Source: Ylistrum balloti (taxonomy: Eukaryota). Taken from it: a stretch of DNA of 64,000 bases. This document shows positions 1 to 24,949 of the stretch, piece by piece. Within the stretch, counting starts at the first letter, position 1; every line of letters begins with the position of its first letter. The stretch is from the NCBI RefSeq assembly GCF_031769215.1, contig NW_026782248.1, positions 62,001-126,000 of the forward strand. The letters are read 5' to 3'. The position numbers and the translations under genes are program-made. The notes beneath the pieces are model-generated. The model did no database searches. It worked only from the letters and a program-made list of their open reading frames with translations, and was not told the origin of the DNA.

Positions 1-95
1 AAAGACTGTTGTTTTAGATATAGTTTATTTTACAAGGTTATCTGATTTAGGCAGCAATCTCGATTCGATTCCATCATATTTTGGGATACGATAAA

Positions 96-412
96 TCATG
101 TTTTGTGATACGTTACATCATGTTTTGTGACACGTTACATCATGTTTTGTGATACATTACATTATGTTTTGTGATATGTTTTGCGATACGTTACATCATG
201 TTTTGTGATATATGACATCATGTTTTGTGATATGTTTTGCGATACGTTACATCATGTTTTGTGATATGTTTTGCGATACGTTACATCATGTTTTGTGATA
301 TATTGCATCATGTTTTGTGATATGTTTGCGATACGTTACATCATGTTTTGTGACAAGTCACATCATGTTTTGTGATAAATTACATCGTGTTTTGTGATAC
401 GTAACATTATGT
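96..412. repeat. Tandem minisatellite, ~22-bp unit ATCATGTTTTGTGATACGTTAC with ~11-bp partial units
   Basis: Unit read directly, repeated more than 10 times with variants. Confidence 0.9.
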
Positions 413-829
413 CTTGACGGAATCCTTTTATATTGTAGTAACATATATATTTAGTATAATGGCATGAACGGTGCCACCATATCCTACAATGTTAAATATG
501 TGAATGAAAGATATTCATGCAATCGTTCTGTAATAATCAGTGGATTATCACTACAAACGTTCACAAAAGACGCATAAGTGAATAGCTCCTTTCCATACAA
601 ATTAATAATAATAACCGTATCGTCAAACAATTACATTAACTACATCCTACAGCAACTAAGGCCTTCTGGATCTCGTAATTGATGCGCAGTCCGAAGATGT
701 TAAAATCTAAGGGAATACATTTGTACCCAAAAAATGTCTATATATAAACGACAAAGTGTACTAACCCAAGAATTCAAATATAAATGTAATAAGTGCTCAT
801 AAGGGGTTTTAATTGTATCGTGTTGTTTA

Positions 830-960
830 TTGTATTAGTTTGGGTCAGTGTTTATTCTCCGTCCGGAATCTCCTACTTTCCTCCACCATCCGAACCAGAC
901 ACGTCTTTAAATGACCCCGGGTTTTATTGGGACGTTAAGTAACATTAAACCAAAATCAAG
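830..960 (+). mobile_element. SINE-like 3' fragment; related copy in opposite orientation at ~22470-22630
   Basis: The reverse complement (cccggggtcatttaaagacgtgtctggttcggatggtggagg) matches ccagggtcatttaaggatgtgccaggtttaggtggtgaag at ~22500. Both lie next to AAAC-type tails. Confidence 0.5.
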
Positions 961-1093
961 TATTAACTGAGAAAATTTCTCGAGGAAGTATGTTATTTGT
1001 CTCCCTTCTCCCAGTCTTTGTTTAAAAATATACCCATTCTAATGTCTAGTTCGCAATACGTACGGTAATTTTAAAGTTTAGTTAATTACAAAC

Positions 1094-4000
1094 CAGTACA
1101 ATTTCCTCATAAGATGAAAGTAGAATTTTTTCACGGATAAATTGCATCGTGGATTCCTCATCATACGCTTCAGGGATCGGAACCAAAGGAACACAGACAA
1201 ACTCGTCATCAGGATTGGCTGCTGTTAGCCATGCGCAGTAGAACAGTTTGGCTCCAAGGATTGACTGTCCAAGGATTCGTCCATAGCCAGAACTGTGTAG
1301 ACCGATCACCTTCAGGGTTGAATATTACAGATTGTAGAATGAGATTATAAGACAAAGCCGTTAATGTTGTATATAGATTCTTAAGGCTTTACTATTTCTG
1401 AAGACTGAAGTGAATCTATCCTCTTAAGTCTAGACGGAGGTAAAATATAAGTATATAATTTTTTTAAAAGATACAAAATGTGACCACACGCTCAAGGAAT
1501 TGTTTTTCTGGAATGTTATTACCATAATTTATCACACTACCTCCTCCTATGACTATAATTTAACTATGGGATGGTTGTTTTGAAATTGCACCATTTCAGG
1601 CATCATTAACGGTGATATTACCTTGTGTGCTAGGTACACTCCTGCCGCCGCTGCTCCTGGTTTTGATGTCTCCAGTCCTAAACAATTGACAGTTACGTAA
1701 CCAGTACTGTTCAGCATATCAGTGGAAAAGGCCAGAAAAGACTTCATTTGTCCATTCCTTTAGTTAAACACAATAAGTCATTATTTCAAGTTATATGTCT
1801 AGTCTAAACTCTTACGTCCCCCCTTTTGATGGTGGGATTAAAATACAGGACAGAGGCCTCATTGAAAAACATTTTCCAAAACTGAATTGGTTCGGGTAGT
1901 GAAACATTAACATGTTATTTAAGAAATGATAAATATGCCATCATAATTATCATTCTCACTCAAAATCAATAAAACATAGGCAAAACATGAACAAAAGAAA
2001 GATGTACACGGTTACAAAAGTACAAAGTATAAACTAGGTGTTCCGGAGGAGTACGCATTTTCTGATCCATCGACGACACTCGCTATGTAAATATTGGTAT
2101 CTGCCACGCTCGTTGAGCAAGCACTTGTACATAGAAAGGAACTTCCGATATGTCCAGGGATGAAATAATTTACTTACTTCTTTCAAACTAGGATGGCTCT
2201 AAACATCGCAAGAAGGACATGGCAAATCTCGGGGACTAAAAGTCTACCGTTTTTAAATCTCAAAGACTGACTAGAAGACGCATCGGGAATAAACGTCACA
2301 ATTTCAAATTCATAACTCGATATTAGTTAAACTGTATCGTACAGTTGTTTAATCCTTGAAGGAAATGTTGACCTTTTGACCTTTTGGACTTTCAATTTCA
2401 TAATAAAAACGTGTCCGAACAACAAAGAGTCAAGAGGAACTGTTCTAAAGAATTTAATTAAAATTTCTATGGAATAAGTAACTTATAAAATCATCAGGAA
2501 ACTTTTGATTTTGCTGCAAGTCTGTATAAGCATAATGGTGATTTATTTATTTGTAGAAACATCGACAACAACTTACAGCTTACATCTTACCTATAGCACA
2601 GAAATCCTGCCGGATAGGGACAATATCCCGCTTTGTGTGGATCAATGGTTACTGTGTCTACATCCTTTAAGAAAGACAATTGTTTTCTAACGTAGTCACT
2701 CAGAGGAAAGGCTGGCAACAACTTGTCTTTCTCCTCAGGCTTTCTTATCATGGTCGTGTAATAACCACCCCAGGCTCCATCAACAAGCAGGAAGAAACTG
2801 AGGCCCTGTAACACGTGTAAGGTTGTTGTTTGTTAAAATGCGGTACAATATGAAGATGTTTAGATATTTCAAATATCATAATAAAACAGAGAGGCCAAGC
2901 TGTTTTCAGATAAGCACCTTTGAATGACATTATCATTCCTGGATAACTAGCTGTGACGATAATATACGACACCAAAGGAAAGGAGGAGCAACATTCGTAC
3001 ACTGATATACCCTTTAAAACATATTTGACATATATATTTAGTATCAATCCTTAAAACTTGTTATTTCTGAAGTGCTTCACTTCTTGCCTTGGTCCTATAC
3101 TCTGCTCTCAAGTGAAGAATATCTTCAATTGAATCCACAGATCCATGCTCTGTCGTACCGATGATACATACAATGGCAATAACCGGGACTTTTTTCACTA
3201 GACATCCGTCAAGAAGTCTGCGCAATGCTGAAGAGAAAAGTATTTCAGTGCGATTTCAACTTCCCTCGGATTTAAAAAAAATAAAACACAGATGAATTGC
3301 ACCTTTCAATACAACAAATGCATGTATATATCGTATAACCAAACATTGAATACAACTACAACAAACAAATAGTCCGCCTTTGCAGTATACTTTGGTGTTG
3401 TATTCCACCTTTGCAAAATACTTAAGTGTTCGAAAGGGCTTCAGTATTGGGAATTTGAGTCAGTGATGAATCTAACAATCACTCACAGTCGTTTTGGAAA
3501 ATGCTCTTCATTAAATCTTCTTTTTGTTAACACAAAATAATTCCAAAAGGGAGACAAATCAAATACACAAAATAAGTACACATGGATGATTTACATAAAA
3601 ATTGTATCTTTATATATGCTTATACATATGACATCAGGTATTGAAACATAGTTAGCGATAACAGGAATGAAAAGTTGGGATTTCAGGTTAGAATTCAATA
3701 TATGATGCCGGGGACAATACGATTGTATTTAATACCGTTTGTATTACTCCAATGACATCACTCACCAACAACATCTGTCCTTGCAGAATGATCGAAAGGG
3801 ACACATATTAAATTGCGTCCTCCGATCCCCATAAGGGTTGCAGCCTTCTCCCAGGTAAAGTGTTTGGCAGCGGAAGTCATAACCACTGGCTCGATTGTCA
3901 ACCCGTGCATTCGATAAAATTTGACAAATCCGTTGTGCTCGATAGAGTACCTTAAAGTAGATAAAGATTTTAAGAACAGTGAACGTTTATATATAACCAA

Positions 4001-6601
4001 TACATAAACTTATAGTATCTATGACATATTAAAATAAATGAAACTAACAAATACAAGGTGAGTTGAAAGGATATTCATGACAAGTCTTATGTGGATATGT
4101 GCGCTTCATTAAAGACATAACGAAATTGATTATTATTTACATAACACTTGACGAAACCAGTAAAGACAGCAAAGAGTGAAATATTATCTAAATGGTAAGT
4201 AAATGAGTAAAGCATTGATGCTATTATGTGGTCAGTCAGTGTTAAGTCAATAATGTACTGAAAGAGATTCAATAAATGTCAACTGTATAAAGATATGGTA
4301 TTTATTCTATGCCAGATGCAAGAAACAAAGTCAGGATTAACCAAATAGTTAAAAATGTATTCTTAAGTGTTTTATCAATCGAATAATATAGTCTAGATAC
4401 TCTTTTTTAAATGTTCTGTAAAATTTAGTTGAATTAATTTATGTTAATGGACAAAATGATCAAAACCTTATGAATTTGGTCAATGACTGATGTTTACACA
4501 TCAGCACTGTAAAAGTATTACTGAAAGAATGGCTAAATGTGGCACTTCTTGTAGCAGTCATTGAATTGTATTATCGATTAATATTAATATCAAACAATTG
4601 AAGATTAAGTGAATAGTTTTTCATACGTTTTCAGCTTGGAATCTGAACTGTTCGAATGCTGCAAGCGTATCGATTGTAAGGAATTTCCGTTTTAGATGCG
4701 CATGTCCATACCGGTTCCGTACATTTTTTTCCAACGGTTCTCAAAATAAAAAATAAACCCAATTGGTAAAATATTGTCTTCAAATTTACGGAGGTTTTCT
4801 TTTTTTCTTTTTAGGGAACGAACTATTTGCAAATTCTATTCAAGTGGTATGGTTAGTATTGAAGATTTATTCCAGAACAGCTCACATATAATTACGTCAC
4901 ATATGATTTAGGTAACTGGTTTTAGAGTAGGGTCTTCATGTCGTATTCGGTCACAGAAAGAGGGTTTTTTTCTATAAATTTAGTTGGGACAAGTGTTCAT
5001 CTGCTAGATATAAATGCACCGGAGCGTTCCACCTTTTCTCCTATATGCCTAGCATTAAGATCGCCTCTCAAAAAAGACCATCCACGACATGTATATTGTA
5101 ATAAAAGCAAATCTATCCTGATTCGTCTAATCACAGACCTTGATATCGCCTACGGCCAAAACTTTTTTTTTCAAATTGATTTTTAGAAATATGTTCTGAA
5201 AATAAATCTCAAGGTCTTAAGTCTTAAGGTCACCTGAAGTATTTTCGTCGGACAAAATGAGTGGAACAGTCAACGTATTCAAATCTCTTAAATGATAGGT
5301 TCCGAATTTCTTACTTGTTGATAACTTTTCTGAAATCAATGTTGTCATCTTTGATCAATTGACTAATTTCTTGTGGTAAAGATATGACGTCATCAAGGTT
5401 AAGGTTCAGAAGGTCCCATGTAGAGGAGGATATCAACTTCTGTTTTCTATCCAGTCTGGGAATATACACCCTTAGATCCTTTACGTCTGCTAACGTTGGT
5501 TCTTCCCGAATAGCTTTTTGGACTGCCAAAGGAAAGAACTTTACATTTCTAGATGCCCACAAAGCTTCGATATTGGAAGATGATCCACCATTGGTAATGT
5601 ACCCCCGTGGATTGCTTCTCTTATTAAAGCCAAGCAAGTCACACAACTGTTTTCCGACCTCTATCTCAAGTTGTGTTGTCACTGGACCACCCTCTTTGCC
5701 CGCATTGTTCGCATTGGTCATCCATGCGGCGAGAAATCCCAATCTTGCCGCTGTTGCCGTATCAGCCAACATGTGGCCCTAAAATACATATTGTAAACAC
5801 GACATTTTTTAATGATATTTCAAACATATTATAAGCGTGTTATGTATTTTGCTACTGTGTCCAGGTGATGGTGCGGTGCAATTATAATCTAATCATCTAT
5901 CGATTACTTCCTATGATGTCTTTCTTTGTTGTAAACACTCTCAATCTCCCAAAAGTAAATAATGCATCTTTGATTTATATCTTCTAAAATGCTTCTAATG
6001 ACAATGATGCGAATAATGTTTCATTTATCATTTCAATTGAAATAGATATGATTTTAATGTCAAAACGTACTTTACTTCCAAAGTATTGTATACTGAAACA
6101 CACATGGTAAACACCGGCTAGAGTAAAATAAGCCGATGATTCAGAATGTAACATGATATGAGTAACTGGTTCATCTCTCTACCGATCAAGTTAAAAGGAA
6201 ATTCCTTCTAGCTTGAAGCAAGAAGGCGATCGTTACTGTTAAGACAAATATAAAATGTCAAAAATATTTTATCCTACCTGATATCTGACATTCGCAAATG
6301 GAATTGACTCCGACAGTGTATCGTTCAGCGATTTTAATTCTGTTTCAAGCTTAGACATCTCCTTTTTGTAATTTGGTGATGCTTTCACTTCGGACGTGAT
6401 ATACAGACTATCCTCCTGGAAATAACTTTTGGGTTTGGCATTTTGTCGAATTGCTTCTATCGCAAGACCGCAGAATTCATCTATGTTTTCAGCTGACGGT
6501 CCAATAAACCAAGATCCTAATTTCTCCCATTGAGTTTTACAGATGTCGGAAGTCATCCTCTGATCACAACCGTTATTTTCGCCTCCGCCGGAACAAGCCA
6601 T
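1094..6601 (-). CDS. Group II PLP-dependent amino-acid decarboxylase, bacterial/fungal tyrosine-decarboxylase-like; 3' end unresolved
   Basis: Phase-consistent exons 6601-6278, 5778-5315, 3950-3766, 3227-3088, 2805-2591, 1757-1622, 1309-1094 (560 codons). Motifs in order: YQGHM, NANNAGKEGGPVTTQLE, GYITNGGSSSNIEALW, KHFTWEKAA, IIGTTEHGSVD, VDGAWGGY, TIDPHK (PLP lysine), LETSKPGA, GYGRILG. Confidence 0.88.
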
Positions 6602-6879
6602 TTCCCCCTATGAGATGAGACGGGGTTTGTTTTTAGAAAACCTAAGGACAATATTAGACAATCATATAATAGTGATTTAGATCTACTGAAATGGATTATT
6701 CATTAGAAATCATTTTAAAAATCCATAATTCCTTGTCTAAAACAACTTCACTGCTTCGTCGTGCGATATGTCTGAGTTTGAAATATTTCTTTCCTTCGCT
6801 GAACACATGCCATTAACAAACACATGACACATATACAAAACACCCAGGACACCAACCGCTTGAATTCACAATGTAGGTC

Positions 6880-8480
6880 AATCCAGAAAACGTTTCATAG
6901 TAAATGACTTAAATTTCTGCTTCATCCCACGAAATCTAAGCAACGCAGAATTGGTACAGGATATGGATTGCTTCTACAAACGACTCCGTCTTTGCGTACA
7001 CTTTACCAAAGACGAAAAAAAGACGGATTACTATGCCACAGATGTCCCGATCAACTCATTTTATAAAAAAAATACAAGGAAGTCGCCATCTAAGGTTCAA
7101 GCACTGGAAGCCTTTATAGACGCGGTAAAACAGGAAATATCCGAACACTATACCAAAACTCAAACCCAAAGAGATAGCCTTGGGAAAGGAGAACGGAAGG
7201 CCTTGCAAGCCTTAAAACAGAACACCGATGTTGTGATCAAACCAGCTGACAAATGCTCCGCAGTGGTTGTCATGAACAGAGATGATAACGTTAAAGAGGT
7301 CAGTTGCCAGTTATCAAATGAGACATTCTATCACAAAGTCGATCATGACTTTGACGTTAGAACATGCTCAAAAGGTCGACGCTACCATCAACATGATATT
7401 AAAGAGAAGAGATATAAATACAGAAACAACAGAATTTTGACGCTGCGATTCCCCAAGGGCAGAAAATTCAAAGTTCACTGACTTCCACCTTATGTGGAAA
7501 ACCTGCCATCTTACTTGAATGATACCACAGACTACCGAAAAAAAGACACCATGTAGCGATCTACCTAAAGACACGTTCTTGGTTACTATGAATGTACTCT
7601 TCCTGTTCACTACTATCCCACACGTGGGTGGCAACTTAGCTTGCCGTGCAGCATAGGACACCAGGGAGTACAAACATCCCGAAAAAGATAGTCTGATAGA
7701 CCTTCTAAACTTAGTGCTCCAAGATGGCACCATCATATGCAAAATATTTATGGGCATCTTGAGTCTAGGCTACATGCTACAGCCCTATTGAAACCTCTCA
7801 GCTGCTTTAGATTCATTGACGACATTGAGATCAAGTGGGCACCCGTCAAACATCTCTCGTGCATTTCATTTGTTTTCCAAACGAATTCCACATGACCATT
7901 AAGTTTACTGCTGACATGTCCGGCGAGAAAATCACTTTCTTGGCCACTTGTTCAAAACTCACCAACGGATAAATAAGCACGGGTGCATACAGTAAACCCA
8001 TAGACACTCACCAGTACCTTCGCCCATCTAGCTGTCACCCACCTCATACCACAAGCGTTGAGAATCAAACATATTGTTTCTGACAACGATGTCTTTACAC
8101 GCCGTTGCTTAGAACTGAAGTCCCACCTTCTCAACAGTGGATATAAGGCAGCTCTGATCAACCGCGAAATCTGAGGATCAACAATGACCGATGATCTATG
8201 AAAGAGAAACGCCCGGAACTACTTTTTTGCCTGTAGTAAGACCTTTCAACATGCCAAGCCATTCGTGGCATGACATGCAGGTGGTACCCATAACCAATGC
8301 AGGAGTTGGAGTGACCAGCAACGCCCAAATAAGGAACGATACTTGATCAACCTACTCCAAACCTGCTACCCACTCGTCATGAATGAGAGATAATCTTGTT
8401 ACTACATACAGATCCGGTCAATCATTCTTGGCAGTCGGTACATCTCAAGCTACCACTGAGGCAACTAGTATAATATCACC
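6880..8480 (+). mobile_element. Decayed Penelope-like retroelement (RT plus GIY-YIG tail), frameshifted and internally deleted
   Basis: ORF 6951-7481 (FYKRLRL, VIKPADK, VVVMNRDD). Further RT motifs in shifting frames: LFTTIPH, ANIFMG, RFIDDI. GIY-YIG-type C-terminal region from ~8168. Confidence 0.8.
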
Positions 8481-24292: not shown

Positions 24293-24949
24293 TCATAGTC
24301 TATTGTATAGATCAACAGCTTCAAAAAGGGATTTTAGACCTGTAATGTTACGATAAAAATCGTCTCGAGTAGACAGAAGGTCACTGCAGTCCAATAAAAA
24401 ATGTTTAACAGTGAATGGCTCATCACATCCTATGCACCGAGGATTATCTTCGCCTTTCAACATATATGAATGTGTAAGGTATGTATGACCCATCCGAAGA
24501 CGGGTAAGGACAACTTCGTCTCGGTGGTTGTCTCTATAGTCTGGAGACCATTCACCGATAATAGGTTTAACGGAGTGCAATTTGTTATTGGTATAGGTAT
24601 TCCAATCCTCCTGCCACTGAGCTTTTAAAATTTGTTTGATAAATGGTTTAAAAGCGGTAAAATGAAGTTTAAAAACAACAGGTGGTAGCAATAAAGCTTC
24701 CTTTGCGGCACGATCTGCTTTTTCATTGCCTGGTATTCCCATGTGCCCAGGAACCCAGCAAAAAGCATTACGAAAGTTAAAAGCAAGTTTATGATTTAGT
24801 ATGAAGGTATTACGAATGAAAATGTTTTCGATATTTCTATTGCTAAGACTTTGTATAGCAGAAAGAGAGTCTGAATGGATAACAGCTCTCATTACGTTGT
24901 TTCTTTGAATATACTCAAGGGCGAGGTAGTTAGCTCGCGCTTCTGCCAA
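24293..24949 (-). mobile_element. 5'-truncated RNase H-containing non-LTR retrotransposon (I/Nimb-like) ORF2 C-terminus
   Basis: Open 218 aa with IHSDSLSA, WVPGHMGIPGNEKADRAAK (RNase H), RLRMGHTYLTH and a C-x2-C...H...C zinc knuckle. Confidence 0.88.

Follow-up and report, generated by a model that had tools for sequence, protein, structure and literature searches.

A 64,000-nucleotide stretch of the genome of the scallop Ylistrum balloti, referred to here as the window (NCBI RefSeq assembly GCF_031769215.1, contig NW_026782248.1, positions 62,001 to 126,000), carries near its first position most of a minus-strand gene for a pyridoxal phosphate (PLP)-dependent decarboxylase. Rebuilding this gene from the raw sequence (window 1-6900) gave seven minus-strand exons between 6601 and 1095, whose phases (0, 0, 2, 1, 0, 2, 0) chain without a stop and which encode 560 aa. 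This product is identical throughout to residues 1-560 of a 692 aa public protein, here termed P0001, which a word-indexed search names as NCBI RefSeq 'L-tyrosine decarboxylase-like [Ylistrum balloti]'. Exact spliced alignment of P0001 against the window returned the identical seven exons, including a GC donor, and exon 2, used as the sole query in a search of 1.84 billion representative proteins, matched P0001 at 100% identity. An earlier note, made from the DNA letters alone, had proposed seven phase-consistent exons with an intact PLP lysine, with which the rebuilt gene agrees; its lower bound, 1094, is likewise a true exon-intron border, the gene itself continuing past the edge of the window. 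The other 132 aa are encoded by exons 8-10, located outside the window at 64-912 bp past its position 1 (locus L006), which bring the Ylistrum gene to ten exons and nine introns, with the frame intact over all ten exons and usable splice sites. Judged from its sequence, the feature represents a genuine scallop gene with introns, for which the public genome already has an annotation.

The first exon (6278..6601, minus strand, as are all those that follow) opens with the ATG at 6601, encodes residues 1-108, identical to those of P0001, and ends in phase 0 at a GT donor. Exon 2 (5315..5778; residues 109-262 plus 2 nt) has the motif GHM at its start and includes the rim helix region and RGYITNGGSSSN, the PLP phosphate-binding stretch; on its own it matches 6EBN, the structure of the noncanonical aromatic amino acid decarboxylase (AAAD) of the mushroom Psilocybe cubensis (PcncAAAD), at E 3e-24. 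Exon 3 (3766..3950), which runs to residue 324 in phase 1, contains KHFTW with the PLP-stacking histidine, His293, and is followed by the 140 nt exon 4 (3088..3227; residues 325-371), which encodes GTTEHGSVD and ends at the GC donor of intron 4 (AAG/gcaaga). The in-window donors are otherwise GT, five in number, and every acceptor is AG; the paralogue P0151 has GT at the donor where the window gene has GC. Exon 5 (2591..2805; residues 372-442) holds Asp380 in LLVDGAWGGY and the Schiff-base lysine, Lys429, in TIDPHK, and exon 6 (1622..1757; residues 443-488) holds a diverged catalytic loop, STDMLNSTGY, in which Met457 stands opposite Tyr471 of PcncAAAD, and then LETSKPGAAA. Exon 7 (1095..1309; residues 489-560) encodes GYGRILGQ; although its open frame reaches a stop only at 1082-1084, splicing in the public protein and in the homologues takes place at the donor at 1095/1094 (CTG/gtttgt). 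Beyond this, window 1..1094 (minus strand) is taken up by the first 1,094 nt of the 1,156 nt intron 7, exons 8-10 lying outside. The motifs on which the earlier note had based its assignment are present as GHM, KHFTWEKAA, GTTEHGSVD, DGAWGGY, TIDPHKAGYCPYPAG, LETSKPGAAA and SGYGRILG.

The protein belongs to the group II PLP-dependent decarboxylases, scoring 54.3 bits against the Pfam profile PF00282 (cut-off 27); single exons were all sub-threshold against this and the family models, their best score falling to the Enterococcus-type tyrosine decarboxylase (TyrDC) model. That model, the equivalog TIGR03811, is also the best in NCBIfam for the whole of P0001, but at 247.9 bits against a cut-off of 905.3, and PF21391, the TyrDC C-terminal small domain, reached 22.9 bits, just below its cut-off; the label of 'bacterial TyrDC-type' enzyme (248 bits vs a cut-off of 905) is not supported. 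Among solved structures, the top match is 6EBN (E 4e-136, 458 bits, over residues 25-683), followed in the same PDB sequence search by the TyrDC structures 7CWX and 5HSI (about 1e-59, 206 bits). The canonical animal enzymes are marginal, with GAD65/67 at 32-34 bits and GADL1 at 21 bits over about 100 residues, which bears out the original impression of an enzyme unlike animal DDC, HDC, GAD or CSAD: the DDC/TDC/HDC, GAD and CSAD/GADL1 groups share the PF00282 domain and PLP chemistry with P0001, but constitute other subfamilies with marginal sequence similarity to it. An AlphaFold2 model of P0001, built on a 41-sequence alignment (pLDDT 88.3, pTM 0.88), gave the same ordering when compared by Foldseek, with 6EBN at rank 1 (TMq 0.91, 36% identity) and TyrDC at rank 2 (TMq 0.77, 24% identity).

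Of the solved decarboxylases, PcncAAAD is thus the nearest to P0001, in both sequence and modelled fold, over the whole catalytic domain; P0001 belongs to the PcncAAAD-like noncanonical AAAD clade, whose prototype and first studied member is the Psilocybe enzyme and of which the Enterococcus/Lactobacillus TyrDC constitute a more distant sister family. The likeness to TyrDC and to fungal enzymes previously claimed was right at the superfamily level, with TyrDC the nearest bacterial model and the fungal enzymes related, and misplaced as to the specific home of the protein (458 vs 206 bits). A three-part fold, with the TyrDC-type C-terminal small domain, is common to TyrDC and P0001, but sequence identity is only 24%, and P0001 falls far under the equivalog cut-off. 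By contrast, the catalytic N-terminal domain of PcncAAAD (20-707) aligns over its full length with residues 25-683 of P0001, and the PLP lysine, the histidine before it, the stacking histidine and the aspartate are all identical. The principal differences lie in length, PcncAAAD having 1013 aa against 692, with P0001 stopping where the C-terminal domain would start, and in single positions: the site-A ligand Glu638 is Gln in P0001, as the catalytic Tyr471 is Met457. The C-terminal domain of PcncAAAD is common to the long animal homologues, and calcium activation, which acts via this domain in the fungal enzyme (PMC13062060), is inapplicable to P0001.

In scallops, the family exists in two forms. 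The long form, of 1062-1098 aa, consists of the catalytic core flanked by a beta/gamma-crystallin domain (PF00030) on the N-terminal side and by the C-terminal domain on the other. The fusion of PF00030 (63 bits) to the decarboxylase core is seen in the long scallop forms P0159, P0160 and P0161 and in the transcript P0006; beta/gamma-crystallin domains often bind calcium, and the calcium activation of the fungal enzyme runs through a different domain. The short forms, of 689-717 aa with a single exception of 801 aa, make up a clade sister to the long form (IQ-TREE support for the short clade 100) and are conserved in four scallop genera. P0001, in which the appended C-terminal domain with its calcium sites is missing, ends at residue 692, five residues past a phase-0 intron that divides the core from the C-terminal domain in the long forms, which indicates that the domain was dropped at an exon border. 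The scallop long form would have given rise to the short form, which then multiplied: no fewer than five short copies are present in Y. balloti, and three of them cluster within a 65 kb section of contig JAUZWB010000874.1, at 3.8-11.3 kb (plus strand), 41.7-49.5 kb (minus strand) and, as the window gene itself, 61.1-68.6 kb (minus strand). A second paralogue was sought inside the window and not found there. P0151, the neighbouring copy, matches the window gene in the length of every exon and is 74% identical to it, and a dN/dS of 0.23-0.28 indicates purifying selection on the pair. For P0152 (717 aa, locus L008), the remaining copy of the cluster, exact spliced alignment stalled at residue 396, and the KHY region reads SHLRTSNKP where NHFSWDKAA is expected; the public model may hold a mis-called exon or represent a damaged copy.

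The columns of Lys429 (DPHK), His293 (KHF) and Asp380 (VDGAW) are invariant in the 41-sequence alignment, A1, and P0001 retains 71 of the 82 columns conserved in at least 90% of 67 other family members, these three residues and His428 among them. A PLP-bound decarboxylase is therefore the default reading of P0001. The cofactor would be held as an internal aldimine on Lys429, stacked on His293 and with its ring nitrogen paired with Asp380; in the enzymatic activity, substrate and biological role that we infer, an L-amino acid, most likely aromatic, would be converted to an amine by decarboxylation. Departures from the conserved columns gather at functionally sensitive sites: KHY has become KHF and EGSKPG has become ETSKPG in P0001, and the motif WGH, just before the phosphate-binding GGSxAN, reads RGY in the subclade of the window gene, the short copy P0154 retaining WGH. 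The substitutions from which a changed substrate had been suspected (DGAW, a leucine for histidine before it, and ETSK) are real, but constitute weak evidence: ctenophores and further scallop copies also have DGAW and the leucine, and ETSK occurs within the clade of short scallop forms. Larger changes, which the note had missed, are the loss of the C-terminal domain, the remodelled catalytic loop and the change from WGH to RGY. In group II decarboxylases a tyrosine of the catalytic loop (Tyr471 in PcncAAAD) serves to protonate the carbanion. The loop is rewritten in every short form, with no loop tyrosine conserved among the short copies; Tyr463, six residues past Met457 in the same low-confidence loop, is found in three of nine short copies. 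In the AlphaFold model, pLDDT falls below 50 at residues 455-464, within this loop.

Tyr471 has been named as the catalytic tyrosine of PcncAAAD, and removal of the C-terminal domain from that enzyme abolished all activity, the domain and a calcium site together holding a lid over the active site (PMC13062060). Short forms may have altered regulation, substrate or reaction type. In alignment A1, the bacterial and animal long forms read VV(Y/F)HGG in the loop (P0001 residues 452-470), with Tyr and Phe alternating between close relatives. A Tyr/Phe switch in the loop of plant AAADs separates decarboxylases from aldehyde synthases and, taken with this alternation, means that both chemistries may occur in this enzyme family.

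Evidence on the descent of the gene comes from its introns, which were mapped by exact spliced alignment and counted as shared when they occupied the same codon in the same phase. Those of the window gene follow residues 108 (phase 0), 262 (2), 324 (1), 371 (0), 442 (2), 488 (0), 560 (0), 643 (0) and 687 (0). Six of the nine are held in common with the cnidarian Hydractinia, a level of coincidence with a chance probability of about 2e-12 for six or more (11 Hydractinia introns, about 2,076 possible sites), and none of eight with the basidiomycete Paramarasmius. Intron sharing among molluscs, to which the earlier note had looked for information, extends to seven of nine with the bivalve Mactra and eight of nine with the long scallop paralogue. 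The intron after residue 108 is common to Hydractinia, Mactra and the long scallop form, and that after exon 3 (residue 324) to all the animal genes compared; the intron after exon 2 (residue 262, phase 2) is found, among the genes compared, in short scallop copies only. Similarly, the 140 nt exon recurs with identical phases in all four animal genes, namely the window gene, Hydractinia, Mactra and the long scallop form.

A second line of evidence is the C-terminal domain, which is present in the long paralogue P0159 and in Mactra, cnidarian and ctenophore proteins. The animal long-form domain is homologous to the fungal one by profile-profile comparison (hhalign 98.6% probability, E 1e-15, 221 columns), which settled a relationship for which a phmmer search of the Mactra domain against 6EBN had been suggestive only (E 0.23). 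The architecture of core plus C-terminal domain therefore predates the split of animals and fungi or was shared between them and, together with the common introns, it implies that the gene was intron-bearing in the cnidarian-bilaterian ancestor, with an architecture in common with fungi. Cnidarian and bivalve homologues have 9-14 introns. The ctenophore genes were seen to be single-exon (L001:301-3156, Bolinopsis, 951 aa; L005:301-3549, Mnemiopsis, 1082 aa), each lying within the bounds of a different gene call; their intronless state could stem from retroposition or from a complete loss of introns.

Homologues were collected through cluster look-ups and through word-indexed searches, the latter showing the 120 best matches each, many of them unnamed, a depth from which absence from other bilaterian phyla cannot be proved. 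Among the matches listed, scallops are represented by Ylistrum, Pecten, Argopecten and Mizuhopecten, other bivalves by Mactra and Mytilus, ctenophores by Bolinopsis and Mnemiopsis, arthropods by a copepod transcriptome (Neocalanus) and amoebozoans by Phalansterium. The cnidarian members listed (Hydra, Hydractinia, Clytia, Rhopilema, Acropora, Montipora, Oculina, Orbicella, Dendronephthya and Nematostella) span hydrozoans, a scyphozoan, corals and an octocoral. Fungal homologues are many and about 1000 aa long (Rhizoctonia, Paramarasmius, Obba, Ascobolus, Trichoderma and others), as are bacterial ones numerous at about 690-800 aa, some being fused to EF-hands or an S10 peptidase. The Neocalanus sequence, being transcriptome-derived, could be contamination; related marine sequences group with it in the IQ-TREE tree.

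Trees were built with FastTree (205 sequences) and with IQ-TREE under the LG+C20 mixture model (75 sequences), both rooted on a separate bacterial clade that scored highest on the TyrDC model (381-625 bits, still under its cut-off). Animal sequences are monophyletic in each (FastTree support 99, IQ-TREE SH-aLRT 98), and the bivalves make up one clade within them (support 98). A larger group of 51 rows (SH-aLRT 99) unites the animals with the fungi, the clade of Phalansterium and a single bacterial clade, that of the S10-peptidase fusions. Within the animal clade, branching departs from the species tree, ctenophores falling with hydrozoans and an octocoral, and stony corals lying outside these (IQ-TREE). 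The bacterial fusions to an S10 serine carboxypeptidase (PF00450), P0225 and about 15 relatives (for instance P0189, P0194 and P0203), fall together with the eukaryotic clades and apart from other bacteria, a position that could mean transfer between domains in either direction. Cyanobacterial-type homologues, including P0205, P0208, P0215 and P0263, bear EF-hand domains, and calcium control may therefore have been joined to this enzyme family by a second, independent route.

The reading that we favour, and consider likely, is that of a ten-exon gene for a 692 aa homodimer-type group II PLP decarboxylase of the noncanonical AAAD family, inherited vertically from the cnidarian-bilaterian ancestor or from before it and lost by the majority of bilaterians, with the scallop short form derived from the long. 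A number of observations weigh against it. Among the named matches listed, Bilateria are represented by bivalves and the copepod transcriptome only; in the IQ-TREE tree the animal, fungal and amoebozoan-type clades form a polytomy with one bacterial clade, so that the eukaryotic group as a whole might still go back to an ancient bacterial source. The exon junctions are known from DNA rather than from transcripts, resting on the genomic sequence and the alignment of the public protein. A public DNA run of Y. balloti, which has zero splice joints at exon borders and two small joints (2010-2069 and 2171-2173), both within intron 5, does support the presence of the locus, covering exons and introns evenly, at an ordinary depth and with scattered SNPs. 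On the enzymatic side, two residues of WGH that 90% or more of the 67 other members conserve are changed, giving RGY, the catalytic tyrosine of PcncAAAD aligns to a methionine in a loop where alignments are unreliable, and P0001 has none of the C-terminal domain that PcncAAAD requires for activity (PMC13062060); its activity or chemistry may depart from simple decarboxylation. Loss of the domain need not be fatal, as bacterial relatives apparently manage without it, being about 690-800 aa long or carrying an S10 peptidase instead, with none known to have the domain, although their tails were not compared with it. It is unlikely, if worth entertaining, that the scallop short forms constitute a neofunctionalised subfamily that shed the calcium-sensing domain, rebuilt the loop (leaving it with no conserved tyrosine as proton donor) and no longer makes simple amines, perhaps through aldehyde-synthase chemistry (decarboxylation-dependent oxidative deamination) or use of a non-aromatic substrate; if true, the tandemly expanded cluster would feed a scallop-specific metabolite pathway.

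Of the other origins that might be proposed, horizontal transfer from bacteria into molluscs, or into scallops, followed by gain of introns, is barely credible. Bacterial homologues are indeed as similar to P0001 as are non-bivalve animal ones (36-38% identity; Paenibacillus, Flammeovirga, Aquimarina), the bilaterian distribution is patchy, and the bacterial S10-peptidase fusion clade (for example Desulfatibacillum) adjoins the animal clade in the FastTree tree with a support of 94. However, this adjacency dissolves into the polytomy of the mixture-model tree, and in both trees the bivalves nest in the animal clade with cnidarians and ctenophores, a grouping that the earlier note had itself named as contradicting its idea of horizontal acquisition. 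As six of the nine introns also match the cnidarian gene in codon and phase, transfer into molluscs is unsupported, and the alternative that the note had offered, a patchily retained lineage, is the one upheld. The long scallop and Mactra forms, moreover, bear the C-terminal domain shared with fungi, which no examined bacterial homologue is known to possess, with the same proviso regarding tails. Transfer from one animal to another, for instance from a cnidarian to a bivalve, would explain shared introns and patchy distribution alike, as would entry of the gene from bacteria into the animal or opisthokont stem at a very early date; the departures from the species tree, the intronless ctenophore genes within the ranges of others and the polytomy of deep eukaryotic and bacterial clades are also consistent with such a transfer. 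We nevertheless think it quite unlikely: old paralogy and loss fit the odd branching equally well, the presence of the family in a copepod transcriptome would require transfers in at least two bilaterian superphyla, and the fungal-shared C-terminal domain fits common descent in opisthokonts.

The window copy might alternatively be decaying or catalytically dead, either as a pseudo-enzyme or as a young pseudogene of the tandem family. The want of a domain that PcncAAAD needs (PMC13062060), the methionine at the catalytic-tyrosine position, the changes WGH to RGY, KHY to KHF and EGSK to ETSK, and the single GC donor could all be read as signs of such decay. It is distinctly improbable given the intact frame across ten exons with usable splice sites, the dN/dS of 0.23-0.28, the retention of the PLP lysine, histidine and aspartate together with 71 of 82 conserved columns, the confident structure model (pLDDT 88) and the conservation of the short form in four scallop genera; bacterial relatives, too, apparently lack the C-terminal domain, their tails not having been compared.

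Vertical inheritance of a PcncAAAD-like gene places the scallop copies beside those recently described in ctenophores, whose noncanonical AAADs have been called directly orthologous to the Psilocybe enzyme (bioRxiv 10.64898/2026.10.09.757917, October 2026). That preprint, in which the bilaterian sampling consists of mammals and Drosophila only and thus leaves out the bivalve copies, notes that ctenophores have no canonical DDC/TDC/HDC family yet keep a mushroom-type noncanonical decarboxylase (10.64898/2026.10.09.757917). The Bolinopsis and Mnemiopsis sequences fall in the same animal clade as P0001, but differ in that their genes are intronless and the C-terminal domain is kept. A large survey of canonical AADC evolution leaves the noncanonical AAAD family untreated (PMC10244343), and our literature search found no paper on bivalve copies, on the short form or on the PcncAAAD-like family in molluscs. 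The enzyme family is known and the gene already annotated; P0001 adds to that family a member of derived, domain-less architecture.

Research into how monoamine signalling arose has concentrated on the canonical DDC/TDC/HDC enzymes. The persistence of the mushroom-type family in bilaterians, in bivalves and apparently in copepods, and its expansion and remodelling in scallops, offer some members of this group another candidate route to trace amines, independent of the canonical one. The short forms amount to a natural experiment on the PcncAAAD-like family without its calcium-sensing domain, and the gene as a whole serves as a case study in which bacterial-looking motifs are compatible with an ancient, vertically inherited origin.

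Upstream (5') of the gene, broken open frames at window:6951-8000 and 24293-24949 resemble retroelement remains. A Pfam scan of the frame at 6951-7481 gave no match, the only one among the neighbouring open reading frames scanned being an RNase H fragment (27 bits) in the frame at 24293-24949. Within the gene itself, intron 7 contains a tandem array at window 72-416, with a period of 22 nt (CATCATGTTTTGTGATACGTTA) and higher-order periods of 34, 56 and 90 nt.

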